Assembly: GCA_002104945.1 (NCBI GenBank) | Contig: MCFH01000094.1 | Span: forward strand, 53,836-117,835 | Direction: 5' to 3' | DNA length: 64,000 nt | DNA from: Piromyces finnis finn | Lineage: Eukaryota > Fungi > Neocallimastigomycota | Shown here: positions 3,310-61,391 of the stretch, piece after piece | How positions within the stretch are numbered: position 1 is the first letter of the stretch | Layout: each line of letters begins with the position of its first letter | The notes under the pieces: model-generated | Seen by the model: only the letters and a program-made list of their open reading frames with translations | Told to the model about the DNA's origin: nothing | Database searches by the model: none | Position numbers and translations under genes: made by a program

Positions 3310-4111
3310 TGATAAATAATGAAATTAATAAATATAAAATTATTATTAAACCTGATTTTTAAGTTAACCCTAAAAGTAACTTAAAACAAGTTATAGTTTA
3401 ATTAAGTACTTTACCAAAATTCTTAAATAAAATTAATCCTAAACACTACATATATTTTGATTATTGAAAGAAAATAATAAACTTTAATTAATCGAGATCA
3501 AAATATATAACTCTTGTTAAATTAATTGTTAAATTAAATATTTAATAACTTCGTTAGTAAATTACACTTTAAAAGTAAACAAATATAATAATTCATGTTA
3601 TAAAATAATATAATTAAACACCTTTATTAAAACATTAAAAATAATTATTACTTTAATTAATTGTAAAATAAACAACTTTTTATATTTTTTAACTTTTAAT
3701 TATTTCTTTTATTGTTATTTCTAATTACTTTTATTGTAAATAGTTATTAATTTTATTGTTTTAATGTAAATAGTTTAAATCTAAAAGAAAATATAAATAC
3801 ATGTAAATATTCTTATTTTAATCATTATTATTATTATTAATAAAGAAATATTATATAGTTAGATTAATATTTTATAATTTTAATAATCACTTTTATACTT
3901 AAATAAATAAAATTTTAAATATTTAAATATTAGAAAAACAAGTGTTTCTAATAAAACAATTTAGTGTTTTAACAAAACAATTTTATTAATTTTTATTAAA
4001 ACGATCTTAAATCTTAATCAATATAACTTATATAGTTATAACAAAAGATATAATATAATAATCACTTTTTGAAGTAAAATTCAAAATTAAGATTATTACC
4101 AAATTATATCA
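3310..4111. mobile_element. Solo LTR, family J
   Basis: TGATA...TATCA termini; TSD ACTG (2443-2446 and 4112-4115); first T duplicated by the later C insertion; second copy ~22829-23639. Confidence 0.82.
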
Positions 4112-4117
4112 ACTGAT

Positions 4118-4983
4118 TGTAATAATTCCATTATAAATTATTATATAATAGAATTATTAACTACAATTTATTGATAAATTGAGAATAAAAAGAAAATAAA
4201 TATTAATACTTATCTTTAAGTTCGAGTTTATTATAAGAGTAGAAATAATTTTACACTTTAATAAGTTAATATGTTTTATTATAACTAAGTTAAGTAAAAT
4301 AAAATTAAAAACGCTTTTATTATTATAATTTGTTTCTTATAATAATAACTCTTGATTTATTAGAAGGGAATCAAGAGTCTTTATTTATATTATTTAATAA
4401 ATTTAAAGTTTAAATTAAAATTTTATCTAATCTTAACAAAATAATTTTTTGTTTAGGAAAAGATTAGAAGAAAAACCTAAACAAAGTTCGATCAACATTC
4501 TATACATATTGATCATCGTATATTTTAAGTAAAACCAATTATTTTAGAAATTGGAAAAAACCTTAAAATATCGATTCCTAAACAATGAATAATTATTTTA
4601 AAGTAATTAATTAAATAAATAATTAAATATATTTGATAAAAATATAAAGTTAAATAAAAGTAATTAATTAAATTAATTAATTAAATGAATAAATATAATT
4701 AATAAAAATATAAAGTTAAATAAAAGTAATTAATTAAATTAATTAGTTAAATGCATAAATATAATTAATAAAAATATTAAATAAAATATTAATGAATAAT
4801 ATAATTAAATGGCTAAATGTAATTTAAGATATTAAAATTAAGTGAAAATAAATAATTAAAATAAATTTAAATGAGAATAATTATTTAAATAAATTAATAT
4901 TATTAACATTAATTAATGATTAATAATTAATGATTTTAACTAAGAAATATTAATTATGTATCAAATAATTATTATTTCTTACA
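4118..4983. mobile_element. Solo LTR, family P
   Basis: TGTAATAATTCC...ATTTCTTACA; near-identical inverted copy at 14021-14886; no clean TSD here. Confidence 0.8.
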
Positions 4984-5995
4984 TACATAAACAGTGTAAA
5001 AGGTTTTTATATTATTAGTTAATAAGTTACTAATTAGTTAATTAAGTTAGTTATTACCTCTCTATACGAGTTAATAACTAAATAAAGTTTTATAAAAAAT
5101 AATAAAAGAAAGAAAATAAATATTATAACACTAAAATAAATATAAACACTTATATAAATATTTTATGAAATAACTTTTACTTAAATAATTATATTTTAAT
5201 TATATCTTTTATTTATTTATTATAATTATCTACATTAATTTTATTATAGCTATTAATTTACTTTAATACTAACGCTAAAGTATTTAACGTTAGTTTTGAC
5301 TATACTATTTAACTATATGAGTTTATTTTCTTTACCACTTGATTGGGTAAAGCAAATAAACTTCCTATTTAATTAATAACCATTAATATATGGTTATACA
5401 TATATTTGGCCAATAAATGATGACCAGAATATATGGTTTCAATTGAAATATTTGTGGGCAAACTTATGGCCACTGTAAAATATTGTATTAATAGAATAAT
5501 GTATTTTAATACGTATTTAAAATAATGTATAATGTATCGAATTAATGTACCGTAAATCTTTACAAAATTTATATCACAATACATTAACATAAATCTATGT
5601 GAAATATAAAGTTACGATAAAATAATGTATTACAATACATTAACATAAATTTATGTAAATTTAATTTTATGATAAGATAAAGTTTTTGATGATAAAATAA
5701 ATTTTTTAAATTAAATAATTTTTAACCAATAAATATTTTAGATAAGAAAAAATTTTTTTTATAAACTAAGCCTCAAAATTAGAAATAAATAAATTAAATA
5801 TATGTTTGAAATATAATCAACCATATAGTAAATAAATCAAAACTTTATTTTAAGTTTAGAAAATTCTTTAGTAAATAAATTGAATTTAAATAGTTTAATA
5901 CAAATAAATTCTTTTAATAAATGCATAAATGTAAACAATGTAAAATTATAATATTAAAACATGTATATTAGAATTTATTCAATTTATTTAAAAAG

Positions 5996-6332: not shown

Positions 6333-6379
<47 letters not shown>

Positions 6380-6679
6380 TTTTGTTGTTAGAAATTAATT
6401 TTAGTTAATTTCGGGGAAATATTGAATTATTTGGTATAGAATAATTTGTTGTTGTGATAGTAAATATAGTTTATTAATAGTTAATAAATAGTAATAGTAA
6501 AATTAAAAAAAAAAAAAAAAAAATATTTAGTTTAGTTAATTATTTTGTAATTGAGTTGTTAAATTATTGGTTGGTTTAATATAATAATATAATAATTAGA
6601 AATAGTCAAGTTGAATAGTTTGAATAATTGGAATATTAATTATTGGTTAGTAATTTGTTGTTTATTAAGTAATAGTAAA

Positions 6680-9600
6680 ATGGATAGAAATAGTTATTTA
6701 AGAATAAACAACCGTAGTGATGGAATAGCTGGAGCCAGTGACGCAGGCTCTGAGGCGAGTTCCATGATGGACATTGAGGATGAGACTGGTAAAAGCGTTA
6801 ACACCAGGGGAAGACTCATCCCAAAACCTCCAAGATTTTCAGGAAAAAGAAGTGAACTTCTTTACTTCCTGGCAAGATTGGAGAAATATTTCAAATATAA
6901 CTTAGAAGAAGATGCTACCGACGCCTACAAGCTGGATATCTTGGGATGCTACCTGGAAGGAACCGCCGCCGAATGGTTTGCCGACTTGGAAAGAGAAGAA
7001 AGCCCCCTGTTGAACTCCTATGAAGATTTTATTGAGGCAATGAAGGCTCGCTATAAAACCTGTAACAGTGCCGATGTAGCCAACAGTCGACTTGCAAAGT
7101 TAAAATCAAGCCAATTCAAGAACGTCATGGACTACTGCGAGGAATTTGAGAAGATGGCTAGAGACTCGTCCTTTAATGATGAAGCAAAGATCCATTTCTT
7201 TATGGAAGGTTTACCAACTTCAGTCAAGGAAAAAGCGAAGCTCCTTTACCCAAGAATTAGAAAGATAACTGAGTTAATTAATGTTGTTGCTGCCAATGTA
7301 GAAGTAGAATGGAAAGTCTTCGGAAAGGATCCTATGGATGTCGACGGAAAGAAGAACCGAAGATATAACAGAGACTTAGGAACAAGGTACCTCTCTTATG
7401 GTGTAAAATATAGAAATTATGTAGACCAAGAAAACCCTACCACCTCAGCTAAGCCTAGAAAATGTTTCTTCTGCAAAAGGACTGGACATATTAAGAAGGA
7501 TTGTCCTCAACTTAAGGATAAGGTTATAAATAGACCAAAAGCGTTTATGGCTACTACCGCTGGAAGAAGAATGTTAAATGTTTATGACATTCTATTACAA
7601 GTCAATAATGGAGTGTATCTTAAGGCTCTTGTGGATTCTGGTTCGGACTTAGACTTTTTGGATTGGAAAGCCGTGGACAAGTACAAGATCCCATTCCAAA
7701 GAATGTTTAAGGATAAGTTTGTTGAAGGTATAGGTGGTAATGGATTCTTGAAGTATGAAACAATTCCTTTAATCATGAACATCAAGAATCATAAAGAATC
7801 CATTCAATTCTACCTTACTGATCTTCCTTCTGGTATTTCTGTCATTCTGGGTAAGAATTGGTTAAGAAAACACGATCCTACAATTAGCTTTAAGGATCAA
7901 ACTCTTGAATTCAAATCCGAATTCTGTTCTTTGAATTGCTGTGCTACTCCAGAAGACATGAAAAGAAGAAATCAAGAAGCGCAATTGGCCAAAGAAGAAA
8001 AAAGAAGAAAAGAAAAGGAACTCGTACAAGAAATACTTAACAATTATAAGAATAGTTTAAAAATTAGAGAAAGTGAAATTAGGAATAAAGAAAATAGAAA
8101 AATTATAGATAAAAATAAAAATTCATGTATTAAAAAGAAATGTAGTAAAAATTTAAAATTAAATAAAAAGAATGTTCAAAAGTATATTGTATGTAGTGTT
8201 CTTTCAAATGATGAAAATAGTGGTGAAGATGTTAGAGAAAATATTGTAGAAATTCCAGATGTATATAAGGAATTTGAAAATGTATTTGATGAAGTTGAGT
8301 GTAATGAACTACCTCCACATCGAATATACGATTGTAAAATAAGATTGAAAGATAAAGATAACTTATTTTATGGTCCTTTATACCCTCTAACAGAAGAAGA
8401 AAGGAATACGCTAAAGGAGTATATTTCTGAAAATCTAGAAAAAGGATTTATAAGACCGTCTACTTCACCTGCTGGAGCACCTGTGCTATTTGTTAGGAAA
8501 AAGGATGGAACTTTAAGATTGTGTGTTGATTACCGAAGACTCAATGAAAACACAATCAGGGATTCATATCCACTACCTCTCATATCTGAATTATTCGATA
8601 GATTAAGAGAAGCCAAAGTTTTTACTAAACTTGATCTCAAGTCTGCTTATAATCTAGTTCGAATAAATGAAGGTGATGAATATAAGACTGCATTTAGGAC
8701 AAGATTTGGTCACTTTGAATATCTTGTCATGCCGTTTGGATTAAAAAACGCTCCTGCAACTTTCCAACATTTTATCAATGATGTTCTCGGGGAATACTTG
8801 GATGAATTCGCCTTTTCTTATATTGATGATATTCTTATCTATTCGAAAAACTTGGAAGAACACCGAAAGCATGTAAAGAAAGTTCTTCAAAGATTAAAAG
8901 AAAATGGTCTTTATGCGAAACTTAGCAAATGTGAATTTGAAACTTCAGAAACTACTTTCTTAGGGCATGTTATCTCAGATAAAGGAATCTCTATGGATCC
9001 AAAAAAGGTTAAAGCTATTATGGAATGGCCTGTGCCAACATCTGTTAAAGAAGTTCAGTCGTTTATTGGATTATGCAATTATTATAGAAGATTTATTCCA
9101 AACTTTGCTAGTATTGCTAAACCGTTACATAATCTAACTAAGAAAGATGTCAATTTTCATTGGCCAGAAGAATGTAATGAAGCTTTTTGTATATTAAAGA
9201 AATTCTTTACCGAGGAACCAATTTTAATTCATGCTGATCCTGAATTACCTTTTGTGGTTGAGACAGATGCAAGTAATTTCGCAATCGGTGCCGTATTATC
9301 TCAAAGATTACCGGATAATAACGAGCTTCATCCAATTTGTTATTATTCAAGAGGATTGACTAAATCGGAAAAGAACTACCCAATTTATGATAAAGAACTT
9401 TTGGCTGTTATTGAAGCTTTGAAACAATGGAGACATTACTTAGAAGGAGCTAAGCATCAATTTATGATCTACACAGATCATAAAAATCTTACTTTTCCAA
9501 GGAAGCCCGAATTATTATCGCAAAGACAAATTCGATGGAATTTGTTCTTAACACGTTATGACTTCAAAATACAATATAGACCGGGTAAAGAAGGTGGAAA

Positions 9601-14020: not shown

Positions 14021-14886
14021 TGTAAGAAATAATAATTATTTGATACATAATTAATATTTCTTAGTTAAAATCATTAATTATTAATCATTAATTAATGTTA
14101 ATAATATTAGTCTATTTAAATAATTATTCTCATTTAAATTTATTTTAATTATTTATTTTCACTTAATTTTAATATCTTAAATTACATTTAACCATTTAAT
14201 TATATTATTCATTAATATTTTATTTAATATTTTTATTAATTATATTTATGCATTTAACTAATTAATTTAATTAATTACTTTTATTTAACTTTATATTTTT
14301 ATTAATTATATTTATTCATTTAATTAATTAATTTAATTAATTACTTTTATTTAACTTTATATTTTTATCAAATATATTTAATTATTTATTTAATTAATTA
14401 CTTTAAAATAATTATTCATTGTTTAGGAATCGATATTTTAAGGTTTTTTCCAATTTCTAAAATAATTGGTTTTACTTAAAATATACGATGATCAATATGT
14501 ATAGAATGTTGATCGAACTTTGTTTAGGTTTTTCTTCTAATCTTTTCCTAAACAAAAAATTATTTTGTTAAGATTAGATAAAATTTTAATTTAAACTTTA
14601 AATTTATTAAATAATATAAATAAAGACTCTTGATTCCCTTCTAAGAAATCAAGAGTTATTATTATAAGAAACAAATTATAATAATAAAAGCGTTTTTAAT
14701 TTTATTTTACTTAACTTAGTTATAATAAAACATATTAACTTATTAAAGTGTAAAATTATTTTTACTCTTATAATATACTCGAACTTAAAGATAAGTATTA
14801 ATATTTATTTTCTTTTTATTCTCAATTTATCAATAAATTGTAGTTAATAATTCTATTATATAATAATTTATAATGGAATTATTACA
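14021..14886. mobile_element. Solo LTR, family P
   Basis: TGTAAGAAAT...GGAATTATTACA; TSD CACTT/CAATT (4 of 5); 18 bp upstream of tRNA-Val. Confidence 0.85.
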
Positions 14887-21371: not shown

Positions 21372-22206
21372 TGTAAGAATTAATAATTATTTATGGAATA
21401 ATTATTAATTCTTATTTAATTATTTTTCTAATTATTAAATTAATTAATTATTTAAATTATTAGCATACATTCATTTAAATTACTATAAACATTTATCTAT
21501 ATTGATATTAATTATTCATTTACTTAATTTAAAATTTATTTAATTACTATATTAATTAATTATTTATTTAATTTAGTAATTTATTTAAAATAATAGTAAA
21601 CATTCATTTATTTTATTGATTAATAATATTTGTATTACATTTTATAAGAAACATTATGTATTTTATTTTACGTTTGTATTTTATATTTATGTATCGTATC
21701 TTGAAATAACTTATAGAAACAATTAGAAAATATAAATACATATTAGGACAATCGGATATTAAGGTTTTTCCGAATTTTATTCGGTTTTACTTAATATTAC
21801 GATGATTGATATATTAGTTATCAATCGAATATCTTTTTAGGTTTTTCTTCTAGTCTTTTCCTAAAAAGATTATTTGTTAAGATTAGAAATTCTTTATTAA
21901 ACTTTAAATTATTAAAAAATTATAAATATAAGAACTCTGGAATTCCACTAAAAATCCAGAGTTATTATTTTAAGACAATTATAATAAATAACCCTTTCAA
22001 AAAACTATATTCATAAAAAACATTTAAATTAAAGATAGTCTTAATATTTTGTGTTGCTTATTATAATTTACTTATAATAAACTTTTTAAGATAAGTATTC
22101 ATTTTTATTTACTATTAAGAAACTTTTCAATTTAATAATACATATTACGAATTGTATTATTATAATGTAGATAATAATTATTATTAAATATGTAATAATT
22201 ATTACA
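21372..22206. mobile_element. Diverged family P solo LTR
   Basis: TGTAAGAATT...AATTATTACA; similar to 14021-14886; flanks TTGTG/TTGTC. Confidence 0.65.
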
Positions 22207-26519: not shown

Positions 26520-26655
26520 TACTCCTTGAATAGTAATATGCTCTTAAAATTAACATTTCTTTCCAGATATTGTCCTGTAAGTTCATCTTGTAGTTTAGCT
26601 GTATTCCAAGATATTCCTCATATAATAAAAAGTCTGATAAAATAGGGTTCTAATC
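26520..26655 (-). pseudogene. C-terminal integrase relic of the old Gypsy element that hosts L
   Basis: Minus frame SWNTAKLQDELTGQYLERNV; joins 38027 onward across TSD TAATC. Confidence 0.5.
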
Positions 26656-27459
26656 TGTAAAAGTATAAAATTTAAAACAGATTTTATACTTAAAACAAAA
26701 CAATTTTTATTAACACAAAAATAAAAAAATAAAACATTAAATTTTTATTTAAAAAAAAACATTTTTATTTAAACTCTTAAAAATATTATTAACTATATAA
26801 TAGTTAATAATTAAAAAATTGAAAATAACAATTACATCGATTTAACAAATAAAAATTACATGTATTTATATTTTTTCATAATTATATTTTAATATATTAT
26901 TCTATTTAAATAAACATATATTTAATATAAAATAAACAAAACTAATTTAATTAAATAATAAAATAACAGAACTAAACTAAACTAATTCATTATACTTTTA
27001 ATTCAATTTGAGTAAACTCAAAATTGAATAAAGCCCATGTATTTTCTATAAATTAATTTAATATTATCAATACTATTCTTAATATATTTCCTATTGAAAT
27101 ATAAATAAATCTATTTTTAAAACTAAGTTAAAATTATTAAACTATTCTAAATTTAAATAAAAAAGTATAATCTATTCTAAAATTAAATAAAAAGTATTTG
27201 AAAAATATTTTAATTATTTAAAATATTTGAAATATTTAAATTTAATTAAAATTCTTTTATTCCTTAAACTTAAATATTTATCTTAATTTAAATTTAACGG
27301 AATTATTATAAAATAATTTATTATTAAATTATTCCATAAAATTTACTCAAAAATTTTATAATCAGTTTTACTAAATATTAATTTATTATTTAATAATTAA
27401 TAATTAATTATTAAATAATCTAAAGATATATATTATATCTTTACAATCTCGCCCTTTAA

Positions 27460-29590
27460 GTCGAGCTCCTGCGAGATTATTTTCTTGAAGAAATTTAAAT
27501 AACAAATGGTTACTACTTTTTCTAAATCATAACATTGTTAAAAAAATATATAAGTATTTAATTTATTTATACTCTTATTATCATTCTTGTTACTTATACA
27601 TAATTCTAATAATTTATCTAAAACTTAATCATCAAGAATCCATTTGTTTTTATATTCAGATTATGGTTATTTATAAATTGTTTTCTATTAACATTTTTAT
27701 TTAAGTATTCAAAACAAAACATTAACTTAAGTTTCAAATTTTTATTTATTCAATTCTTCTTGATCATCATGACTTTTATAATCTTCTTATGCATGATTAA
27801 AATTCTATTTTACAATTTTAATACTTTTTATTAATACTTATAGTAATCTGTTCAACTTTCTTTGATTTATTAGCTGAAGAAATTTCAATATTAAATTTTA
27901 AATTAAATCCATAGTTTGTATAAAATTGAAATTGATTGATTGATTACAATAAAATATTATAAGTAGATTCCAATATAACAATCAATTCGATTTTATTAAC
28001 CAACGGAGATATTGGAACAATATCTCGTTCACCCTCTCATTTAAATGAAAAGTCTGTGATAAAATTTATATTAAATATATCAAACAGACAATTCTAAAAT
28101 TATAAAGAAAATAGCATTTAAAGAGTATTAAATGTTTTTTATTATTGTACAAGCTTTAAACCAAGTGGAACTTATTTTTTTTTAAAGGTTATTATTAAGC
28201 AAATAAATATAACAAAATTCTTAGTAATAAAATATTTGTAAAAAAATTAACATTCATTAATAATAATGGAAAAACATCATTCAATAATTATATATACCAC
28301 TATTTTTTTTAATCTTATTATTAAATAAACAAAAGTGGTATCAAGTCATCAAGTAAATACTATAATTTAATTAACAAATTTATCATTTTTAGACGTTTTT
28401 AAAATACTTTTAGCATATTTATAATTCTCTTATTTTATAATTTATCAATATATGGTATTATAAAATTATTTCTTTTTTAAAAATTTAACAATGAATTCAT
28501 AAATTTAAATATCATCAATAAAACATCACAGAATTGATATAAACATATACATAATGTTGTACTAAATATTATTAATTATAAAGTAATTAAAATACTTCAT
28601 CAAAAGCATCACTTAAAATATTAAAATAGAGCTGATACATTTTTGAATAAAAGGTATGATAATAAATTAAAAATGCCATATAAAGATTAAAGCAATTTTA
28701 AATTCATCACCTTATTTAATTCTTACTAAGCTATTGATATATTTAAATTTAGTTTAAAAACATATTTTACTCCATTTATCTTATTTATTGATTAAAGGAA
28801 TATATGAATTTCAATAATTATATCATTTAATTTCCTACAATCAATATATAGTAATTATAGTTATCAATCTCATTATACTTCCATTAAAAAGAATTGTATA
28901 AAGATTAAAATCTTTTTTTTTTCCTTTATAAAGTTCGTTTTATTAAGTACATAAAAACTATTCATTTATTAAAAACTCTTATAATTATTATACATATTAC
29001 ATTAATTTATATTTGTTTTATTCATTATATTTATCATATTTATTAACTTATTATATTTATTAATTTATTCTATTTATTACATTTATCATATTTATTAACT
29101 TATTCTATTTATTACTTTATTCTATTTATTACATTTTATTATATTTTTTTTTTCATTTGTTGTATTTATTAATTCTATTTTTTTTTTTAATTATTATTAA
29201 TACTAACTATTATACTATCAAGTTGTTACTATTACTAAAACTATTCCTCATTAATTTCTATTATAGCTATTTCTAATTCTACAATACTAATACATTACAA
29301 TCATATTTATTTTTTAAATTACATTTATTATAATCAAAATTATTTAGATAACATTATTTTCCATAGGACGAATGTACTTAACATTTTGTTATAATCCTCC
29401 ACAATTCAGTAATTCATTAAGTTTCTTTTTAAAATATTGGAATTTTCAAATTTATTATTTCATTACTGAATTGTTCTTCTTTCTTGTTTCTTTTTATTTT
29501 CATTTTATTCTTTATAAAATCCAGATAAATGAAATTAAGAACAGATCCAGAATAGATTAATTTTCTAGCTCTGATTTCACTACCATCATA
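27460..29590 (-). pseudogene. Decayed and deleted chromovirus pol relic inside L
   Basis: Minus-strand fragments: protease-like RARKLIYSGSVLNF (~29521-29580), RT LVRIK*GDE (~28701-28730) and IDDI*IY (~28500-28525), integrase NFITDF and SINQFQFYTNYGF (~27900-28070), chromo-like SEYKNKWILDD (~27630-27670). Confidence 0.75.
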
Positions 29591-30123
29591 TTATTAAGAA
29601 TAAAAAATATTACACTCATTTCTTATTATATATTTATTTAACTTTATAATTATTCAATCAAAACTACTATATTAATTTATTCAAGTTATTTGAATCTTTT
29701 AAATATAAAACTTACTTCTTAATAAAAATATAAACTTATTAACTAGATATACAATAACTTCTTTATAAAAAATTCTTTATTTAATTAATTTATTTTAATT
29801 TATTAAATATAAAAAACATAATTTATTTAACAACTAAATTTGTAAAACCTCCTCATATTGAATTCAAATTATTTTAATTATTTATTCTTAATCATTTGTT
29901 TAATAAATTATTTAATAAACTATTACAATCAAATTATCTTAATTTACTAAATATAAAAATAATTTTTTTTTTTAATAAATGTATAACTTTTTAAATAACT
30001 AAATTTGTATTGACTTTTGTTGATAAATTCAAATCAAATTAAAAATGCTTTAAATTTATATTCTAATTATTAAGAATTTTCTATTTAGTCAAATATTCAG
30101 TTATATATAATACACCTTTATAT

Positions 30124-31475
30124 AAAAGAAGTCGACCTGACTCCATCATATCAACTGGTGTTAGCGAATTCTTTATAAAGTATAAAGTAAGTTATTACAA
30201 TGAAATTAAATTTTTAAGTTCGTTTTCGTATTACTTCAAAATATTTTAATATATTATATAATATATTTCTTAATTGTATTTATCTAATTTAATTAATAAT
30301 ATATTATCCTTGAATATATTATATTTATTTAGTTAGTTAATCGAATTTATATTGTATCTTCATATTAAAGAAGTCGACCTGACTCTATCCTTTAAAGAAA
30401 AGGTGTCATCGAATTATTTATTTAGTATAAAATTAAATTATTTTAAAAGTAATTTTAAATATCAAATCATTTTCTAACTTCATTAAATTAAATTATATAT
30501 TTCAAATTTTCAAGTTAAATTAATTTATAGTATTTTCAATTTAATTTATTATATACTATTTCCCAAAAAGATGTCGATCTGACTCTGTCCTCTAAAAAGG
30601 TGTCATCGAAATCTTATTATAATAAAGAATAATTTATTTATTTAACTAACTTTACACATTTATTACTTTTACTTTTATTGTAAAATTTTAATTCATTTCT
30701 TAATTTTAATTTATTATATACTATATCTAAAAGATGTCGCTCAGACTCTATCCTATCAAAAGGTGTCGAGCGAGGTCTTTTATAGTATATAATAAATTTA
30801 TTTCAATAAGATAACTTATTCCTCAACTACTTTTAATTAATAAATATCAAAATTTTAATTTTCATATTTCTCAATGTATTTTAAATAAATCTAAAATTAT
30901 TATATACTACGTCTAAAAGATGTCGCTCAGACTCTATCCTATCAAAAGGTGTCGAGCGAGGTCTTTTATAATATATAATAAATATATTTCAATAAAATAA
31001 CTTTTTCCAATAAGTGATATTTACATTTTAATTCACTTATTTCTCAATTTCATTTTAATTAATAAATATCAAAATTTTAATTTTCATACAATATATTTTA
31101 AATAATTCTATAATTATTATATACCATGTTTAAAAGATGTCGCTCAGACTCTATCCTATCAAACGGTGTCGAGCGAGGTCTTTTAAGTATATAATAAGTT
31201 CATTTCAAAATAACAATTAATAATTCATTCAAATAAGTGAAATCAACATACTAATTCACTTATTTCTCAATATATTTAAATAATTTTAAAATTTTATTAA
31301 CTTTTTCTTAATTTTCTTTCTTTTTAAATAAGTTTTAATTTTCTTACTTTGCAATTAATTTTTTGATTTAATTTACTCTTTTAATTGTATATATCCAATT
31401 TAATTTATAATATACTATGTATAAAAGATGTCGCTCAGACTCTATCCTATCAAACGGTGTCGAGCGATTTCTTTT
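30124..31475. ncRNA. Array of seven conserved ~50-nt hairpin cores (putative structured RNA, unidentified)
   Basis: GTCG at 30131, 30373, 30573, 30736, 30922, 31139 and 31430; consensus AAAAGA(T/A)GTCG..(T/A)GACTC..TC..loop..GGTGT...CGA..TCTTT; AT-rich spacers are much more diverged. RNA status is inferred. Confidence 0.6.
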
Positions 31476-32366
31476 TATAGTATATTATAATTAAATTTAA
31501 TTTTAAAAGAGTTTCATCAATTTAAAAACAAGAGTATTTCATAAATATATTTCTATTAGTATTACAGATAGATTTTATATATAAAGATTTCATTGTTCCA
31601 TACAGTAGAGTTACACTTATTCCAATTCCAATATAAAAAGGAAAGTTTCACAGAGTAGAAGTTCCACAAGCAAAGTTCCACGAGATTCGTTCAAAAGAAT
31701 TCCACGAAGGAAGGATTTCACAAGGTAGTGTTCCACAAGTAGGTAAAAATTCCACAATTATAGTATCAGGGGTTTGGCGAATAGGTTGAATTATTTTATT
31801 ATTAAATAAGGTTTGATAAAAATTTAGAAAAGACAATAATAGAAATTTATTTAAAAATTTTACACAAGACTCTTTTATTAATAATTTAAGTTTAAAATTA
31901 TATTTGATCTTTTATTAACATTGAAAAGTGGACTTTTTATAAGTCAGAATAATAAAAAGGTTTTTATAGAATTTGAAAATAATTCTCAATTGAAGCTTAA
32001 CTAATTATTTTTTCTTTAACTATTTATACTAAAGCTTCAATTGAGGCTTTACAATTATTTTAATTTTTTATTAATAATAATTACTAATAATTACTAATTA
32101 AATAAAAATAATTAATAATAAAGATTATAAAATTAATATTACTTCGAGAAGGTGTTATAATTCTTTTACTAAACTAAACTATTTATTCTTCTAAATTTTT
32201 CTATTTATTACTAATAACTAATTTATTAATAATTAAGATTCTTCTACAAAAATTATTTTATTATTTAATATTAATTAAAGTTAATTATAACAAAAAAATT
32301 TTCTTAACGTAATGTAACGTATTGATATATTGATAAGGTCCCTTCTCAAAGACGGATTCCAGACGT

Positions 32367-35300
32367 CTAAAGGAATTTTTCAAGTCTTTCTATATGCACA
32401 ACATCTGAGGCCTTGGAATTAGGCGGGAGTTCTAACTTAAATGTAACAGGGGATAATATTTCCAAGATTTTAAAAGGTCCAATTCTTCTGGAGGCAAATT
32501 TTTTCAATTTCTTCAACGATGGAATTTGTTTGACCCAAACGAAATCACCAATTTTAAATAAAGGTCCTTCAGAGCGATGTTTATCAGCGTTTTCTTTATA
32601 TAAAAGTTTACTTGAATTAATATTATTGTAAATAGAATTAAAATGAACTTTCCAGTCAAGGGTTGTGAATTCCGCATGATTTGAAGCACTAGTAAAGCTA
32701 AGATCTGGATCAAAACTAAGATTATATCCATAAACAATTTCAAAAGGAGACTTTTTCGTAGTAGCATTAATAGAATTATTAATAGAAAATTCCACAAGAG
32801 GAAGATAATAGGACCATAATTGAGGTTCGTCATGAGCAAAACATCTAAGTGTTTGGGTTACAATACCGTTTAGTCTTTCTACTTGTCCATTGCTTTGGTG
32901 ATGATGAGCAGTCGAATATTTGCATTCAATCTTGAGTAGGTTGAGAAGCTTTTTCCAAAAATGAGAAGTAAATTGACTTCCACGATCAGAAGTAATAGAA
33001 TGTGGTAAGCCATGAATACGGAAGATATTTTGAAGAAACAAATTGGCAACGTCTTCGGCAGAGGGAGTACCAGTAACGGAAATTAAATGAATCATCTTGC
33101 TAAATTGGTCAACAACATTCATAATGGTAGTATAGCCTGACGATTCTGGTAAGTCTGTAATAAAATCAACGTTGATGAAGGTCCATGGTAAAGAAGGGGT
33201 TTCTGTAAGTTGGTTCAGTCCGTATGGAGAATGTGTTGTTTCTTTTCTAGTGGCGCATATAACACATTTCTTGATAAACAGATCAACATCGTCATGCAAC
33301 TTAGGCCAATAGTAGTATCTGGTAATTAATTCTTCTGTCTTCTTTGTACCAAAATGACCGGCAACTGGCGTAGCATGATATTTTTGAATAGTGGGAATTC
33401 TCATGTTTAAAGGCAAATAAATCCTATTATTATAATAAAGAATATCGTTAATAATTTCATAATTTTTATTAAACTCACCCTTTACTTTAATTGAATTTAT
33501 AATATTTTGAATTTCAAGATCAAATTGATATTGTTTTTTGATTTCATCAAAGAATAGTTCATTATCGTTAAAAGAAGTAATAAGTCCAATAAATAAATCA
33601 GGTCGTCTTGATAGTATATCGGCTTTCTTGTTTGAGGCTCCACTGCAGTAGACAATTTCATAATTAAACTTTGAAAGAAATTCAAACCAACGAATTTGTC
33701 TGTCGGAGAGTACTTCAGGTTTCTTTGGAAATTTAAGGTTCTTATGGTCACAAAATATTTTGAATGGTTCCTTAGATCCTTGTAAATAATTACGCCATTC
33801 TTTAAGGGCCGATATTATGGCTAGTAGTTCTTTGTCATAAATGTCGTATCGTACTTCCGCATTTTTTAGTCCTTTTGACATGAAAGCACAAGGGTGTAAT
33901 TTATTATTCTTATCGTATTGAGATAAAACAGCTCCCACAGCGTAATTGCTAGCATCGGTTTCTACTATAAAAGGTTGAATAGGGTCTGGTATCATTAATA
34001 TAGGGTCGGTGGTAAAGGCACCCTTGAGCATAGTAAAGGCTGCTTCTTGTTCTTTATTCCAGTGAAATTCCTGACCTTTTCTTGTTAATTTTGTCAAAGG
34101 TTGAACAATTTTTGAAAAATTGCAAATGAATCGGCGGTAGAAATTTGCTAAACCTAGAAACTGCTGAACTTCTTTCACGGTTTTTGGACGAGGCCAATCC
34201 CGAATGGCGGCTACTTTGTCTTGACACATTGATATACCTTTATCAGAAATTTGATATCCAAGAAATTCTACAGAGGATTTAAAAAATTCACATTTTTTTA
34301 ATTTACGATAAAGTCCATTATCAAGTAATATTCTCAAGACTTTCTTGACATGACTAATGTGTTCTTCACGTGTTTTTGAGAAAATTAGTATATCATCTAT
34401 ATAGGAGAAGGCGAATTTATCCAATACAGGAGTTAAAATATCGTTAAGGAAATATTGAAATGTGGCTGGAGCATTGGTAAGACCAAAGGGCATTACTTCA
34501 TATTCAAAGTGGCCGAATCTAGTACGAAAAGCAGTTTTTGCTTGATCACCATCCTTGATACGTACTAAATTATAAGCACCTGGTAGATCTAGCTTAGTAA
34601 AGTAGGAGCATCCTTGAACATGGTCGAGTAAGTCCTTGATTAATGGCAACGGATATGAATTTCTAATTGTGGCTTGATTAAGTTTTCTATAGTCAATACA
34701 AAGGCGAAGCGTACCATCTTTCTTTGGTACAAATAATACTGGAGCACCATAAGGAGATTTAGAAGGCTTAATAAATCCTTTTCTCAAGTTCTCTTCGATA
34801 TATTCCTTTAAAGTTTCTTGTTCCTGAAGGGTTAACGAATATAAGGGTCCATAGAATGGCACTGAATTTGGTTTTAAATCAATGGCGCAGTCATACACTC
34901 TGTGTGGTGGTAATTCTTCTGGTAGCTTTTCATCAAAAATCTCTTTAATTTCCATTAATTCATTTGGGATTCTGGGTTCCTTTTGATTATTATCTTCTTC
35001 ACTAAAAAGTAAATCTTGTTCTGTGAAGTCCCTAATTACATTGACTTCAATACATTGTTCTTCATCTAAATTAGGAGTTAATGTCGGAAATTCTAAGATA
35101 ATTTCCTTATTAAAGTTAAAGGTGGCTTTATTACCCTTAAGCCAATTGTACCCAATGATGCCTGAATAGTTATTTAAGTTAATAACAAGGAATGTGATAG
35201 AACTATAGTAGTTTTGATAATGGATAGGTATCTCTGAAGTCTTTCCAAACACGGTAGATTTTCCATTAATGCCATGGACAAATTTAATCTCAGGATCTAG

Positions 35301-36308
35301 GGTGTATTGGATTCCATGTCGCTCAGCATAGTTCTTATCAAGGAAACAGGCAAAAGCACCAGTGTCGATTAAAAATGGGGTAGGTATAGTTTTACTATTA
35401 TTGATTAATTCAAAAGTAACTACAGGACATGTCTTTTCTTCTTGGGCTTCAGCACTAATAGTAGAAATATTGGTAGGATGGTCTTGTTGGTGTCTAATGT
35501 CGTTTTGACGTTTAAAACAATTATCTTCATTATGACCAATTCTTTTACAATAACCACAGCGTTCAAAGTTAGAGTTTCGGTTACGGATAACAACTGGAGT
35601 TTCACGAGAATGATTTGGAATAGGCCTAGATGGAGGGGTTTTGTAATTTCTCTGGTTATTTTTTCTTTGTCGGTGATTCATTTGTTGGAGTAAATGACGA
35701 TCAAGTCGGACTGCAAGTTGAGCAAGATCATCTAGGGTTTCTGGAGGAGGGAAAATATTGTCGATTCTTTCTTGTAAACGACTATCTAAGCTTTGGTAAA
35801 AGTTGTCAGTTAAAAGGGTTTCGTCAGTATCTATAAATACAGCGAGACGACGGAATTCGTTAACGTAATCTAACACATTACCAATTCCATGTTGGCGTAA
35901 ACGTCTGAACTGACGTTGGTAGTGATATTCTAAATCGGGGTCACCAAAGGTGTTACGGATTCTCTTGATGAATCCTTCAGTATCTTGCTTAAGTAACGGA
36001 TATCTTTCCAAAAGTTTACTAGCCCATTGATAGGCTTGTCCTCCCATATTGTTTAAAAGGTAGCTTACTTGCCTATCCGGGGTAGAGAAGCGATGAGAAT
36101 AATTTGCGAAGTTTGTTTTACAATGAGCAATGTAAGATTCCACCATAACTCTATCTCCAAAAAATCTTGGTGGACGTCTCATATTATCATCAACATCCAT
36201 TGGCTCAGCTTCTTCTCTAACGGATCCTGAATCATCAAGTAGAGGTTCTTGTTCTTCCATATCGGCAGCAGCATAGGCTACATAGATGTCATTATTATTG
36301 CGACTCAT
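32367..36308 (-). CDS. gag-pol: Gag-Pol polyprotein without chromodomain (first ATG after the PBS)
   Basis: CCHC CGYCKRIGHNEDNC, protease LIDTGA, RT YIDD, RNase H ETDAS, integrase HHCC/DDE, GPF motif; ends VVHIERLEKFL. Confidence 0.95.
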   Translation of the reverse strand: MSRNNNDIYVAYAAADMEEQEPLLDDSGSVREEAEPMDVDDNMRRPPRFFGDRVMVESYIAHCKTNFANYSHRFSTPDRQVSYLLNNMGGQAYQWASKLLERYPLLKQDTEGFIKRIRNTFGDPDLEYHYQRQFRRLRQHGIGNVLDYVNEFRRLAVFIDTDETLLTDNFYQSLDSRLQERIDNIFPPPETLDDLAQLAVRLDRHLLQQMNHRQRKNNQRNYKTPPSRPIPNHSRETPVVIRNRNSNFERCGYCKRIGHNEDNCFKRQNDIRHQQDHPTNISTISAEAQEEKTCPVVTFELINNSKTIPTPFLIDTGAFACFLDKNYAERHGIQYTLDPEIKFVHGINGKSTVFGKTSEIPIHYQNYYSSITFLVINLNNYSGIIGYNWLKGNKATFNFNKEIILEFPTLTPNLDEEQCIEVNVIRDFTEQDLLFSEEDNNQKEPRIPNELMEIKEIFDEKLPEELPPHRVYDCAIDLKPNSVPFYGPLYSLTLQEQETLKEYIEENLRKGFIKPSKSPYGAPVLFVPKKDGTLRLCIDYRKLNQATIRNSYPLPLIKDLLDHVQGCSYFTKLDLPGAYNLVRIKDGDQAKTAFRTRFGHFEYEVMPFGLTNAPATFQYFLNDILTPVLDKFAFSYIDDILIFSKTREEHISHVKKVLRILLDNGLYRKLKKCEFFKSSVEFLGYQISDKGISMCQDKVAAIRDWPRPKTVKEVQQFLGLANFYRRFICNFSKIVQPLTKLTRKGQEFHWNKEQEAAFTMLKGAFTTDPILMIPDPIQPFIVETDASNYAVGAVLSQYDKNNKLHPCAFMSKGLKNAEVRYDIYDKELLAIISALKEWRNYLQGSKEPFKIFCDHKNLKFPKKPEVLSDRQIRWFEFLSKFNYEIVYCSGASNKKADILSRRPDLFIGLITSFNDNELFFDEIKKQYQFDLEIQNIINSIKVKGEFNKNYEIINDILYYNNRIYLPLNMRIPTIQKYHATPVAGHFGTKKTEELITRYYYWPKLHDDVDLFIKKCVICATRKETTHSPYGLNQLTETPSLPWTFINVDFITDLPESSGYTTIMNVVDQFSKMIHLISVTGTPSAEDVANLFLQNIFRIHGLPHSITSDRGSQFTSHFWKKLLNLLKIECKYSTAHHHQSNGQVERLNGIVTQTLRCFAHDEPQLWSYYLPLVEFSINNSINATTKKSPFEIVYGYNLSFDPDLSFTSASNHAEFTTLDWKVHFNSIYNNINSSKLLYKENADKHRSEGPLFKIGDFVWVKQIPSLKKLKKFASRRIGPFKILEILSPVTFKLELPPNSKASDVVHIERLEKFL

Positions 36309-36375
36309 TTTGATCTTACTAAGAATAGTTAAATGTACAGTAGTTATAATAATCCAAGGTATTCTGTTAAAATAG

Positions 36376-36388
36376 AATTGAGAATTAT
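36376..36388 (-). promoter_or_regulatory. Self-priming PBS of K
   Basis: ATAATTCTCAATT directly follows the 5' LTR; complementary to the LTR segment 36604-36616; TATAAA at 36648-36653. Confidence 0.85.
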
Positions 36389-37225
36389 TATCAGGGGTTT
36401 GGGGAATAGGTTGAATTATTTTATTATTAAATAAGGTTTGATAAAAATTTAGAAAAGACAATAATAGAAATTTATTTAAAAATTTTACACAAGACTCTTT
36501 TATTAATAATTTAAGTTTAAAATTATATTTGATCTTTTATTAACATTGAAAAGTGGACTTTTTATAAGTCAGAATAATAAAAAGGTTTTTATAGAATTTG
36601 AAAATAATTCTCAATTGAAGCTTAACTAATTATTTTTTCTTTAACTATTTATACTAAAGCTTCAATTGAGGCTTTACAATTATTTTAATTTTTTATTAAT
36701 AATAATTACTAATAATTACTAATTAAATAAAAATAATTAATAATAAAGATTATAAAATTAATATTACTTCGAGAAGGTGTTATAATTCTTTTACTAAACT
36801 AAACTATTTATTCTTCTAAATTTTTCTATTTATTACTAATAACTAATTTATTAATAATTAAGATTTTTCTACAAAAATTATTTTATTATTTAATATTAAT
36901 TAAAGTTAATTATAACAAAAAAATTTTCTTAACGTAATGTAACGTATTGATATATTGATATATAGTTCCACAAAGTAGTGTTTCACAAAATTTATTTAGA
37001 ATTTCACAAAGTAGGGTAACACAAAATTAATGTTACACTGACAGAAGTTACACCATAAATAGTTCCACAAGGTAGGCTTCTCAAGTAGACAAAAAAAAAT
37101 TTCCGAAGAGAAAAAATTTCCGAAAAGTTCCAAATTTTCTACGGTAGCAATTCCCAATGTTGTAACTTCAGAAAATAAAAATTGTTTTATTATTAAATAT
37201 AAAACGTGTTTTTTAATAAGAAAAG

Positions 37226-37236
37226 GTAATTGTTAT
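37226..37236 (-). promoter_or_regulatory. Self-priming PBS of L
   Basis: ATAACAATTAC directly follows the 5' LTR; complementary to the LTR segment 37406-37416; TATAAA at 37446-37451. Confidence 0.82.
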
Positions 37237-38026
37237 TGTAAAAGTATAAAATTTAAAACAGATTTTATACTTAAAACAAAACAATTTTTATTAACACAAA
37301 AATAAAAAAATAAAACATTAAATTTTTATTTAAAAAAAAACATTTTTATTTAAACTCTTAAAAATATTATTAACTATATAATAGTTAATAATTAAAAAAT
37401 TGAAAATAACAATTACATCGATTTAACAAATAAAAATTACATGTATTTATATTTTTTCATAATTATATTTTAATATATTATTCTATTTAAATAAACATAT
37501 ATTTAATATAAAATAAACAAAACTAATTTAATTAAATAATAAAATAACAGAACTAAACTAAACTAATTCATTATACTTTTAATTCAATTTGAGTAAACTC
37601 AAAATTGAATAAAGCCCATGTATTTTCTATAAATTAATTTAATATTATCAATACTATTCTTAATATATTTCCTATTGAAATATAAATAAATCTATTTTTA
37701 AAACTAAGTTAAAATTATTAAACTATTCTAAATTTAAATAAAAAAGTATAATCTATTCTAAAATTAAATAAAAAGTATTTGAAAAATATTTTAATTATTT
37801 AAAATATTTGAAATATTTAAATTTAATTAAAATTCTTTTATTCCTTAAACTTAAATATTTATCTTAATTTAAATTTAACGGAATTATTATAAAATAATTT
37901 ATTATTAAATTATTCCATAAAATTTACTCAAAAATTTTATAATCAGTTTTACTAAATATTAATTTATTATTTAATAATTAATAATTAATTATTAAATAAT
38001 CTAAAGATATATATTATATCTTTACA

Positions 38027-38990
38027 TAATCTATTTCTTTGTTAATTTCTAATCTTTATTTTATCCCTTATTTTATAGTTGTTTTTATTCATCATACTTT
38101 GCTGAGCTAATCTTCTACTTTTCCAATAATTTATTGTCTTTAACGTTTTACTGGCAGCTTGTTTTTCTCATTTTAAAAACCTTTCCATTAATAATTCTTC
38201 TATTGATCTTTCTTTTATTATTAATATTGAATTTCTTATATTGATGTCAATTGGAATATTATCTGATCTTCCATACAATAGTTCAAAACTTGAATAACCA
38301 GTAGACACAGATTTACAAATTCGGATAGCCCATAATGCAATTGGTAGCAATACATTCCAGTTTTCATTGTTATCAGAGAAATTTCTTAATTGCTTGCCAA
38401 TTTTTCTGTTCCTATTTTCAATCAGTCCATTATATTCCGGATGGTATGCAATAATAAAATGAATATATACGTCATATAGGTCTACAAATATTTTTGTATA
38501 TTCAGAAACAAATTGTACATCATTATCTGTCATTATTAATTGTGGAATTTCATGCCTGCTGAACACTTCAACTAAAAAATTAGTTACATCTTGAGAGGTA
38601 GTAGTTCTAACTGGTTTTTCTTCTACCCACTTTTTAAAATAATCTACGCGTATCATTATATATTTGTTTCCAAGTGTAGTTTCTTTTAATGGACCTATAA
38701 TATCAAAACCAAGTCTAACAAAAGGAGCTTTGACAGGTGTTCTAAATTTTTCCGTTGGTTTTGGTAGTAGTTTCAGTTTGTTTAATTGATAGATTTTGCA
38801 TAAGGAGACATATTTTTTTACATCAATAATTAAACTTTTCCAATAATATTTATTCTTGTTCCTTTCATATGTTTTTTGTACTCCTTCGTGTTCTGTTCTA
38901 TATTCCTTTGCAATTATCTTGGTATTGTATAAGGATCGTCAATAATCTCTCAAAAATTATTATTATCTTTGAAATATAGTTTATTGTCAA
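38027..38990 (-). pseudogene. Gypsy integrase relic (HHCC region and core), includes ORF 38168-38656
   Basis: HRTEHEGVQKTY...YYW, FDIIGPL, DYFKKWVE, IMTDND, YHPEYNGLIENRN; stops and frameshifts present. Confidence 0.85.
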
Positions 38991-38996
38991 TAATGG

Positions 38997-39720
38997 TGTA
39001 AAGATATAAAATATATCTTTAAATTATTTAATAATTAATTAATAATTATTAAATAATAATTTTGATATTTTAATGAAAAATTATTTATAAAATTTATTAT
39101 ATAAATTTTATGGAATAATTAAATAAAGATTAATTTTAAAATATCAAAGTTAGAAATGAAAATTGGATAAATATTTAAATTAATGGATAATTAAATTTAA
39201 ATATTTTAAATATTCAAATTAAATCTTAAAAAGTTTTTATTTAATTAAAATTAGTTTAATAACTTTAGTGTAGTTTTAAATTAGCAATTTTTAATAGTAA
39301 ATATATAATAAATAGTATTATTAATATTTAATTAATATATAGGTAATACATGGACTGTATTCAATTTGTAGTTTATTCAAAGTGTATTTAATTAGTTTTA
39401 GTTTAGTTTTATTATTTAATTATTTAATTATTTAATTAAATTAGTATTAAATTAGTTTTGTTTATTTTATATTGAATATATGTATAATTAAATAGAATAG
39501 TATATTAAAATATAATTTACAAAAAAAATAAATACATGTAAAATTTCTTGATTAAAACAATGTAATTGTTGTTGGCTATTATTTAGTTAATAACTAAATA
39601 AATTTAATAAAAGAGATATTTTTAAATAATTTATTTTTTGTTTCTTTTTTGTTTATTTTGTGTTTATTGTTTTATTGTAAAAAATTTTATAATCTGCTTT
39701 GATATATAAAACCTTTTACA
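38997..39720. mobile_element. L-related solo LTR (diverged)
   Basis: TGTAAAGATA...CCTTTTACA; similar to L LTRs in the opposite orientation; no TSD. Confidence 0.7.
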
Positions 39721-41319: not shown

Positions 41320-41786
41320 TGTAAAAGGTTTATTATAAATTAGTTAATAAGTTATCACTATCTAGTTAATTAAGATAGTTATTACCTCTCTATACGAGTT
41401 AATAACTAAATAAAGTTTTATAAAAAATAATAAAAGAAATAAAATAAATATATAAATATTATTAGGAAATAAATCTACTTAATAATTATTTGTTAATTAT
41501 ATCTTTTATTTATTTATTATAATTATTATACATTATTTATTATTATAGCTATTAATTTACTCTAATACTAACGCTAAAATATTTAACGTTAGTTTATGCT
41601 ATACTATTTAACTATAGTAGTTTATTTCCTTTACCACTTGATTGGGTAGAGCAAATAAACTTTCTATTTAATTAATAACCATTAATATATGGTTATGCAT
41701 ATATCTGGCCAATAAATGATAACCAGAATATATGGTTTCAATTGAAATATTTGTGGGCAAACTTATGGCCACAAATATTTCTTACA
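41320..41786. mobile_element. Solo LTR, family I
   Basis: TGTAAAAGG...TTTCTTACA; flanks ATCAT/ATAAT (4 of 5). Confidence 0.85.
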
Positions 41787-42121
41787 ATAATATTGATAAA
41801 TAATTAAATTTATAAATTATAAATTAATAAAAATCATAATAATAATAACAATAATTAAAATACAGATAAAAATTAAAATATTTAACATGTATAAAATTAT
41901 TAAATTAAAAATTATAAATGTAAACTTTTTGTTTATTTAATTGTTTACTTATTTTTAAATTAAATAGTTTATATTTGTTTATAATTATACTTTAAAATGA
42001 TAATTTTGTATACATTCATTTTAAAAGATGTTCCTAATAATCCGTCAAAATTAGATATATTATATTAAATTTAATAAATGGTTACTAATTATCCAAAAGA
42101 GAAAAATTAGACATTTATTTT

Positions 42122-53747: not shown

Positions 53748-54425
53748 TGTAAAGATATAATATATATCTTTAGATTATTTAATAATTAATTATTAATTAT
53801 AAAATTTTTTGAATAAATTTCATGGAATAATTTAATAATAAATTATTTTATAATAATTCCGTTAAATTTAAATTAAGATAAATATTTAAATTTAAGGAAT
53901 AAAAGAATTTTAATTAAATTAATTACTTCAAATATTTAAACAATTAAAATATTTTTTAAATACTTTTATTTAAATTTAGAATAGCTTAATAATTTTAACT
54001 TAGTTTAAAAATAAATTTGTTTATATTTAAATAGGAAATATATTAAGAATAGTATTGATAATATTAAATTAATTTATATATAATACATGGACTTTATTCA
54101 ATTTTGAGTTTACTCAAATTAAATTAAAAGTATAATGAATTAGTTTTAGTTTAGTTTTGTTGTTTTATTATTTAGTTAGATTAGTTTTGTTTATTTTATA
54201 TTAAATAGATGTTTATTTAAATAGCATAATATATTAGAATATAATTATGAAAAAATATAAATACATGTAATTTTTATTTGTTAAATCAATATAATTGTTA
54301 TTTTAAATTTTGATAATTAATAAAAGTGAAAAAGTTGTGATAAAAAATATTCTTTTATTTTTTGTTTTCGTGTTTAGTTGTTTTATTGTTAAATATATAA
54401 TCTGTTTTAAGATTAATATTTTACA
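53748..54425. mobile_element. L-related solo LTR
   Basis: TGTAAAGATA...TTTTACA; TSD GTTAT. Confidence 0.85.
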
Positions 54426-60674: not shown

Positions 60675-61391
60675 TGTAAAAGTTTTTATTATCAAAACAG
60701 ATTATAAAATTATACAATAAAACAAAACACACAAAAGGTAAAAAAAAATAAAAACAAAAAAATATCCTTTTAAATTCTCTTTTTTTAAGTTAATTTTGTT
60801 ATTAACTAAATTATAGTCAATAACAATTATATCGTTTTTACATAGAAAATATTACATGTATATTTATTAATGATTATATTCTAATATATAATCCTATTTA
60901 ATCATACACATATTCAATATAAAACAAACAAAACCAATTTACTACTAATTTAAGTAAATAATAAAATAATAAAACTATACTAAAATTAATTAAATACACT
61001 TTTGATTCAATTTGAATATGCTACAAATTTAACACAGTCCATGTATTACCTATATATTAGAATAAATATTAATAATATTATTTGTTTATATTTACTATTA
61101 AAAATGCTAATTTAAAACTACGCTAAAGTTATTAAACTGATTTTAATTAAATAAAAACTTTTTAAGAATTAATTTGAATATTTGAAATATTTAAATTTAA
61201 TTATCCATTAATTTAAATATTTATCCTAGTTTTCATTTTAACTTTAATATTCTAAAATTAATTATTTAATTATTCCATAAAATTTATTTAATGATTTTTT
61301 ATAAATAATTTTCCATTAAAATATATTATTTAATAATTATTAATTAATTATTAAATAATTCAAAGATTTAAAAAAAATTTATATCTTTACA
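60675..61391. mobile_element. L-related solo LTR
   Basis: TGTAAAAG...ATCTTTACA; TSD AATAG. Confidence 0.85.

Follow-up and report, generated by a model that had tools for sequence, protein, structure and literature searches.

The window, by which we mean the whole 64,000-nt stretch of Piromyces finnis DNA that was analysed, has a GC content of 10–20% outside coding regions. It contains six tRNA genes, at which its elements cluster, and three intact Ty3/gypsy polyprotein open reading frames (ORFs). The seven hairpins described here lie inside an element, designated L, that is delimited by two identical LTRs and by a 5-bp target duplication (TAATC, 26651–26655 and 38027–38031; Table 1). Derived from a self-priming Ty3/gypsy retrotransposon, L is non-coding, transcribed and multi-copy, and its identical LTRs and several copies show that it was recently mobile. 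It has the features of a LARD, namely direct LTRs with a target duplication, a primer-binding site (PBS) and a polypurine tract, the latter within a 7-bp inverted repeat (ATCTCGC..GCGAGAT), and it carries no intact gag or pol. The longest ORF inside L is 62 aa, and the decayed integrase and faint RT remnants are colinear and located on the same strand. The PBS points to Tf1-type self-priming: its complement, GTAATTGTTAT, occurs in both LTRs (37406–37417 and 26825–26836), and, as in Tf1 and Tf2, the predicted transcript would pair through its first 11 nt with the PBS beside the 5′ LTR (GTAATTGTTAT/ATAACAATTAC), with the R region of this LTR probably starting near 37417. Self-priming concerns the replication of L and not the array, whose hairpins are complementary neither to the primer nor to the PBS.

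Because of the self-primer/PBS layout and the colinear minus-strand RT and integrase remnants, the L RNA is assigned to the minus strand, which supports the placement of the array, in a preliminary description of this DNA, within a non-autonomous LTR element with minus-strand RNA. Read in this direction, L starts with the 5′ LTR, PBS and a leader made of CUUGUGGAAC repeats; the hairpin array follows, from unit 7 (U7) to unit 1 (U1), and is separated by ∼1.4 kb of AT-rich sequence from the RT and integrase traces, beyond which lie the purine tract and the 3′ LTR. The array is thus located just downstream of the leader, at the former gag site. The leader is split by an autonomous Ty3/gypsy element, N, which is flanked by its own target duplication (TATAG, 31759–31763 and 36961–36965) and was inserted within the leader repeat, 287 bp from the nearest hairpin unit.

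Table 1. Features of element L, the hairpin array and the nested element N (window coordinates).
Feature	Position	Strand	Details
L 3′ LTR	26656..27445	-	790 nt, TG..CA
L polypurine-tract region	27446..27477	-	sense ...AAAGGGCGAGAT adjoining LTR; placed by position
Decayed integrase C-terminal remnant of L	27763..28059	-	tblastn vs A/C polyproteins: 37%/49 aa, E 4e-4
Faint RT remnant of L	28688..28732	-	tblastn 9/15 residues, E 0.6; weak
Unit 1 core	30124..30175	.	last unit in L orientation; decayed in this copy
Unit 2 core	30366..30420	.	outer stem broken in this copy
Unit 3 core	30566..30616	.	−12.0 kcal/mol, z −3.0
Unit 4 extended hairpin	30708..30798	.	core 30729–30782; −33.5 kcal/mol, z −7.0
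Unit 5 extended hairpin	30897..30981	.	core 30915–30968; −28.0 kcal/mol, z −4.7
Unit 6 extended hairpin	31114..31197	.	core 31132–31185; −28.4 kcal/mol, z −5.1
Unit 7 extended hairpin	31397..31497	.	core 31423–31476; −32.7 kcal/mol, z −7.1; first unit in L orientation
L leader, left part	31600..31763	-	(G/A)TTCCACAAG repeat (sense CUUGUGGAAC) about every 14–22 nt
Autonomous Ty3/gypsy element N	31764..36960	-	nested in L leader; separate from array
L leader, right part	36966..37224	-	same CUUGUGGAAC motif array up to PBS
L primer-binding site, Tf1 self-priming type	37225..37236	-	sense ATAACAATTACC
L 5′ LTR	37237..38026	-	790 nt, TG..CA; 100% identical to 26656–27445

The array comprises seven hairpin units, all on the plus strand, which start at about 30124/5, 30367, 30567, 30730, 30916, 31133 and 31424, and the spacings given in the preliminary description (242, 200, 163, 186, 217 and 291 bp) were reproduced exactly on that strand. 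A gapped core pattern gave six matches, compared with none in 100 shuffles, and a covariance model built from the units (R1) recovered all seven of them with scores of 72–94 bits. Outside the array, the best R1 match on either strand of the 64 kb scored 23.4 bits; it is located at 14611 and was rejected as a different, unrelated LTR hairpin. When R1 was run over the whole window with filters off, the hairpin was absent from the autonomous elements A, C and N.

The ∼52-nt cores differ from the spacers both in base composition (42–45% GC vs 11–14%) and in conservation. Pairwise alignment z-scores relative to shuffles are 10–31 for the cores and mostly 0–5 for the 80-nt flanks (9–13 for those of the young pair U5/U6), which confirms, among the units, the claim that the cores are conserved far above the AT-rich spacers. 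Distant homology nevertheless persists between the spacers: self-alignments with a shift give values of up to 68% over 1.2 kb, and identical spacer blocks of 36 nt and 53 nt are common to units. As the spacers are old copies of each other, the array is the product of tandem duplication and not of independent insertions. U4–U7 share 93% identity over 121 nt, and their identical cores may simply be young duplicates. In units whose spacers are similar only at background level, the cores are still 76–82% identical and retain ∼14 invariant G/C positions against a background of 12% GC. The unpaired letters of the loop and bulge are conserved as well as the arms.

The fold that was originally drawn for U4 and U5 is the minimum-free-energy fold (−22.9 kcal/mol, z −4.9); the corresponding values for the cores of U6 and U7 are −23.7 kcal/mol (z −6.2) and −18.7 kcal/mol (z −4.4). 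For the U4–U7 cores, the plus-strand fold is slightly better than the minus-strand fold. The 16-bp AT-rich stem extension described for U4 is real but not specific to this unit, as the AT-rich arms are present in all of U4–U7, which form hairpins of 85–101 nt with energies of −28 to −33.5 kcal/mol (z −4.7 to −7.1). These outer stems are the least conserved part of the hairpin. When 60-nt folds across the 64-kb window are compared after correction for GC content, those of U4–U6 belong to the most stable. U2 and U3 had been described as keeping the same architecture with other pairs; the alternative arms are indeed seen, but in this copy the folds of U1–U3 are weak (z −0.6 to −3.0). Two of the stem versions pair TCGCTC with GAGCGA plus GAC with GTC, and TCGA with TCGA plus TGAC with GTCA, and two further ones pair TCGAC with GTCGA plus GAC with GTC, and TCG with CGA plus CTGAC with GTCAG; all keep 8–9 pairs and the 5′ bulge. 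Through these four arm arrangements, the hairpin is retained by 7/7 units in their family versions.

In the seven-unit alignment, 92% of the cells are paired, compared with 39–53% when the partners are slid by 1–3 columns. One core pair has changed on both sides (C-G in four units and A-U in two), and in the outer stem a T-A pair of U4 is replaced by A-T in U7, while nine of the 14 main-stem pairs show no variation at all. Covariation across the seven units, confined to this one core pair and one outer pair, is only suggestive, and significance was not reached (73 of 500 shuffles equalled the observed score). Two further arguments of the preliminary description did not hold. G-U wobbles had been taken to favour the plus strand; however, the G·T of U1 is a mutation private to this copy, the U·G of U4–U6 represents one inherited site, and the wobble in U5 favours the minus strand. 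The runs of four to five T residues at unit ends, which had been noted for several units, carry no information at such a base composition. Wobble pairs, poly(A) tails and the depth gradient were all uninformative as indicators of the strand.

Transcription and variation between copies were read from Logan contigs, which carry no strand direction. The contigs of two RNA-labelled runs cover positions 27453–31689, array and spacers included, with a word depth of about 100–1000, in agreement with the proposed transcription of the array. The adjacent LTR of N has a word depth of 0–8 in the RNA runs, and since the ratio of interior to N-LTR depth in the DNA run is only about 1–4, the RNA-run signal does not come from carried-over DNA. 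The RNA contigs run through the spacers and break only within the repeated cores, which places the array within a long RNA. Its RNA word depth is similar to that of the remainder of L, and the highest depth of the stretch examined is found in the left part of the leader. In one RNA and one DNA contig, the sequence from 31439/31452 to 31764 continues with the letters of 36967 onwards, which corresponds to a clean empty site of N. Since an RNA contig bridges this site, N-free copies of L exist and are transcribed. The DNA word depth of the L internal contigs is about 3,400–4,600, compared with about 140–300 at one-off joints; although such a ratio gives no more than an approximate idea of copy number, it points to L being multi-copy, and DNA depth likewise suggests that the L LTR type is far more abundant than the L interior.

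The other L copies also shed light on the weakly folding units. In U1, both 30148 and 30162 are C in these copies, a version that folds with −15.9 kcal/mol (z −4.4), compared with −13.7 kcal/mol in the present copy. A U2 variant with 30408G, 30413G and 30416C, which accounts for about 45% of the DNA depth, folds with −17.5 kcal/mol (z −4.0), compared with −8.6 kcal/mol here. Because the versions from other L copies fold well, the weakness of U1 and U2 is attributed to private decay. The expected constraint on the cores was not seen among L copies: over the positions up to 30432, i.e. the U1–U2 cores and the neighbouring spacers, the cores contain 5 variants per 105 nt, which is no lower than the 10 per 228 nt of the spacers.

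In agreement with the preliminary description, no known RNA family was recognized. Nothing in the array reached an Rfam gathering score, and relaxing the threshold to E 10 gave only two chance-level matches in the array region (a bacterial sRNA, 26.6 vs 51.4 bits, and snR75, 14.5 vs 40 bits); hammerhead, twister, pistol, HDV and hairpin ribozymes and snoRNAs were all absent. No hammerhead was matched anywhere in the window, so L does not have the LTR-borne hammerhead of a retrozyme, and the tRNA model gave no match in the array at E 10. A C/D box snoRNA (RUGAUGA and CUGA) was rejected, as on the minus strand U2–U3 contain GAUGA without CUGA, and U4–U7 contain CUGA without UGAUGA. The core is open on the plus strand (KDVAQTLSYQKVSSEVF), but a coding exon was also rejected: the candidate exon is 41 nt long with non-canonical splice sites, the changes between units are non-conservative, and the RNA contigs are unspliced. 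The end of a MITE or Helitron does not fit units that share spacer blocks and one orientation and have no CTRR end. Exact look-ups of eight short L ORFs, and of the A polyprotein from its ATG, returned no record. A metagenome scan with the core pattern and free stem letters gave a single chance match in a GC-rich bacterial contig, and a literature search found no description of such hairpin arrays in anaerobic gut fungi.

We prefer the reading that a cis-acting RNA hairpin, which would serve to recruit helper Gag or to aid packaging, has been amplified in the array, and we estimate the probability of this reading at roughly 0.4. Of the three roles offered in the preliminary description (packaging or dimerization signals, a small-RNA precursor cluster, and a self-cleaving motif), the first is, by inference, the most plausible, although A, C and N in the same window are without the hairpin; nothing in the evidence favours self-cleavage. 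The broader claim, that the array is a selected cis-acting RNA module, stands slightly better than an even chance. Selection acting on master copies is suggested because GC-rich cores that keep the hairpin and its conserved loops are found amid drifting AT spacers, and, as the genome is so AT-rich, unconstrained G/C would be expected to have been lost by the time the spacers became unalignable. Each hairpin, with its bulge, asymmetric internal loop and apical loop, would form a putative site at which a trans-supplied protein binds, with helper-encoded Gag/nucleocapsid as the likeliest protein. A repeated site would raise the odds of L being packaged, or of its dimerization and reverse transcription, in competition with the helper RNA. 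Growth of the array would probably have involved jumps from unit to unit, by template switching of the reverse transcriptase or by replication slippage. U7–U4, the youngest and strongest units, are nearest to the 5′ end of the L RNA, and the position of the array would fit a packaging signal, as it is downstream of the leader in L orientation and transcribed (in contigs without strand direction). The UG-rich CUUGUGGAAC repeat of the leader is an alternative candidate for the nucleocapsid-binding region, and perhaps a better one than the array.

The alternative that survives best, which we nonetheless regard as unlikely, is that the array is a neutral by-product, i.e. a palindromic segment that was tandem-duplicated by template switching or slippage where coding constraint had been lifted. 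The cores would then align as complex GC sequence that mutates by substitution, while the AT spacers are scrambled by indels, and template switching within the palindrome would keep the arms complementary without selection. Tandem repeats are common inside LTR retrotransposons, and U4–U7, with their high identity and shared spacer blocks, are clearly young duplicates. The non-significant covariation, the free decay of single copies (the private mutations of U1 and U2) and the equal density of among-copy variants in the U1–U2 cores and spacers also agree with this explanation. It is opposed by the identity and the invariant G/C positions that the cores retain where spacer similarity has fallen to background, by the persistence of the hairpin, through four arm arrangements, in the family versions of all seven units, and by the conservation of unpaired loop and bulge letters at the level of the arms.

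It is improbable that the array is a small-RNA precursor cluster, in which Dicer would cut the extended hairpins, with about 35–40 paired positions, into siRNA- or miRNA-like RNAs. U4–U7 have the size and the near-perfect long stems of Dicer substrates, the hairpins are transcribed within a long RNA, and RNAi genes have been reported in anaerobic fungi. However, conservation is as strong in the loops and bulges as in the stems and is lowest in the AT-rich outer stems, and the RNA word depth of the array, similar to that of the rest of L, shows no sign of processing. Moreover, the products would match only L, as no other match is present in the window, and would therefore harm the element that maintains them.

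A role at the DNA level, in which the cores bind a protein as a downstream enhancer, insulator or chromatin signal comparable to the Su(Hw) array of gypsy, is about equally improbable. The layout would suit such an array, as short conserved cores alternate with AT-rich spacers close behind the 5′ LTR and leader, the best-kept letters (GACTC..TC...GGTGT) include unpaired positions, and the TGACTC of U1–U3 is a bZIP (Gcn4/AP-1) half-site. Yet the arms change their letters and stay complementary, which is not what a fixed protein specificity predicts, and the youngest and strongest units, U4–U7, read AGACTC and have lost TGACTC. In addition, the half-sites are 19–22 bp apart, and the loop length is variable in U2.

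The remaining RNA roles (a self-cleaving ribozyme, Pol III mini-units or tRNA-integration decoys, and a CTE-like export or stability element) are very improbable even when taken together: T4–5 is found at the end of each unit, TCGCTCAGAC and GGTGTCGAGCG bear a faint resemblance to tRNA-promoter A and B boxes, the clustering of elements at tRNA genes would be in line with a decoy, and conserved internal loops recall nuclear-export elements, but no ribozyme, tRNA or snoRNA model is meaningful at E 10, a type-2 Pol III unit (A box TRGCNNAGTGG, B box GGTTCGANNCC) was rejected with only about 5/9 specified letters matched per box, the units are not transcribed as separate small RNAs, given that the RNA contigs cross the spacers, and N was inserted at no fixed short distance from a hairpin.

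L and its array can be compared with several known systems. Like LARDs, TRIMs and the Gag parasites of the BARE2 type, L has LTRs, a target duplication, PBS, polypurine tract and a non-coding interior, and is multi-copy, transcribed and dependent on mobilization in trans. However, we know of no described LARD or TRIM with an ordered array of one conserved hairpin, and in L this array is the only clearly conserved internal feature. The repeats of Ogre/Tat, ZAM, Idefix, roo and gypsy (Su(Hw)) also consist of cores with variable spacers in an untranslated region near the leader. Those repeats are read as DNA-binding sites or satellite seeds, whereas the L cores form stable bulged hairpins with arms that vary yet remain complementary. 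Further parallels would be Psi of MLV and HIV-1 and the leader structures of Ty1 and Ty3, which are likewise 5′ stem-loops with conserved unpaired purine-rich loops (in the L sense strand, the hairpin loops read UUUUGAUAGGAUAGAG). These known signals are single composite domains, while the array in L has 7–8 tandem copies and is known from sequence. Retrozymes and Cassandra TRIMs are also gene-less LTR elements with a structured RNA module, but they carry a hammerhead and 5S rRNA, respectively, in their LTRs, and the module of L is internal, repeated and matches neither.

How gene-less retroelements win packaging from their helpers is poorly understood, and the known signals are single, ill-defined RNA domains. 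Elements with 6–8 copies of one compact hairpin would make packaging competition directly testable and would add a structured RNA module that is new, from a fungal lineage on which little work has been done. It is at present doubtful that gut-fungal gene-less LTR elements at large carry such arrays as a multi-copy capture signal for helper Gag or another trans factor; if they do, parasitic retroelements would have a hitherto undescribed way of out-competing their helpers, and the hairpins would form a new class of structured RNA module. If the array is neutral, it is still a clear example of the birth of tandem repeats inside a retroelement in an extremely AT-rich genome.

The family of the autonomous elements A and C, which carry Tf2-1 SH3 and chromodomain regions, is a possible helper family of L. 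The termini of L (TGTAAA...TTTTACA) resemble those of A and C, and both elements have the same kind of self-priming layout as L, each with its own sequences. The closest named relative of one of the polyproteins in the window is from Orpinomyces sp., an anaerobic gut fungus (51% identity). Several LTRs related to those of L are also present within the window.

In the leader of L, the gene-less, minus-oriented LTR element that carries the hairpin units, a UG-rich repeat recurs every 14–22 nt and forms an array that is cut into two parts by the insertion of N, an autonomous Ty3/gypsy element. Within the stretch compared with the contigs of public runs, the RNA word depth (the k-mer depth of these contigs) peaks at the leader repeats. 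Because nucleocapsid zinc knuckles tend to bind single-stranded repeats rich in UG, the array is a candidate Gag-binding region and may be the real one. The clean empty site of N is bridged by both DNA and RNA contigs from public runs, and N is therefore absent from most L copies. In the DNA run, the word depth of the L LTR is 20–50 times that of the L interior. This LTR type is therefore part of a large superfamily, in which many copies are solo LTRs or enclose a different interior.

Features of the L leader, LTRs and other folds
Feature	Position	Strand	Details
Leader repeat array of L	31600–31763 and 36966–37100		Sense CUUGUGGAAC; ~16 copies of (G/A)TTCCACAAG
N	31764–36960		Nested in L; TATAG duplication
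LTRs related to that of L	53748–54323, 59153–59815, 38997–39625, 60798–61391		70–85% identity to the L LTR
LTR hairpin kept in two other families	14611–14673, 4331–4393, 21921–21977	+, −, +	
Three strong hairpins in succession	41670–41790	−	−39.8 kcal/mol, z −6.3
Fold inside gag coding region of A and C	6828–6883, equivalent near 51591	+, −	−24.3 kcal/mol

The LTR hairpin of two other families, in which the arms ACTCTTGATT/AATCAAGAGT are replaced by ACTCTGGA/TCCAGAGT through compensatory changes, may be their R-region hairpin. The repeat that holds the three-hairpin run recurs at 5005–5473.

The fold inside gag of the autonomous Ty3/gypsy elements A and C ranks first in stability among GC-corrected 60-nt folds of the whole window, and its comparison with the hairpin of L revealed no similarity. 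The leader of A contains long A runs and GTTG-rich stretches at 6337–6375 and 6500–6522, and its two LTRs diverge over the final ~40 nt of the 3′ LTR (from about 11966).

The purine tract of L is adjoined by an inverted repeat, ATCTCGC...GCGAGAT (27446–27477), containing the heptamer GTCGAGC that is also present in the 3′ arm of units 4–7; this sharing may be due to chance.
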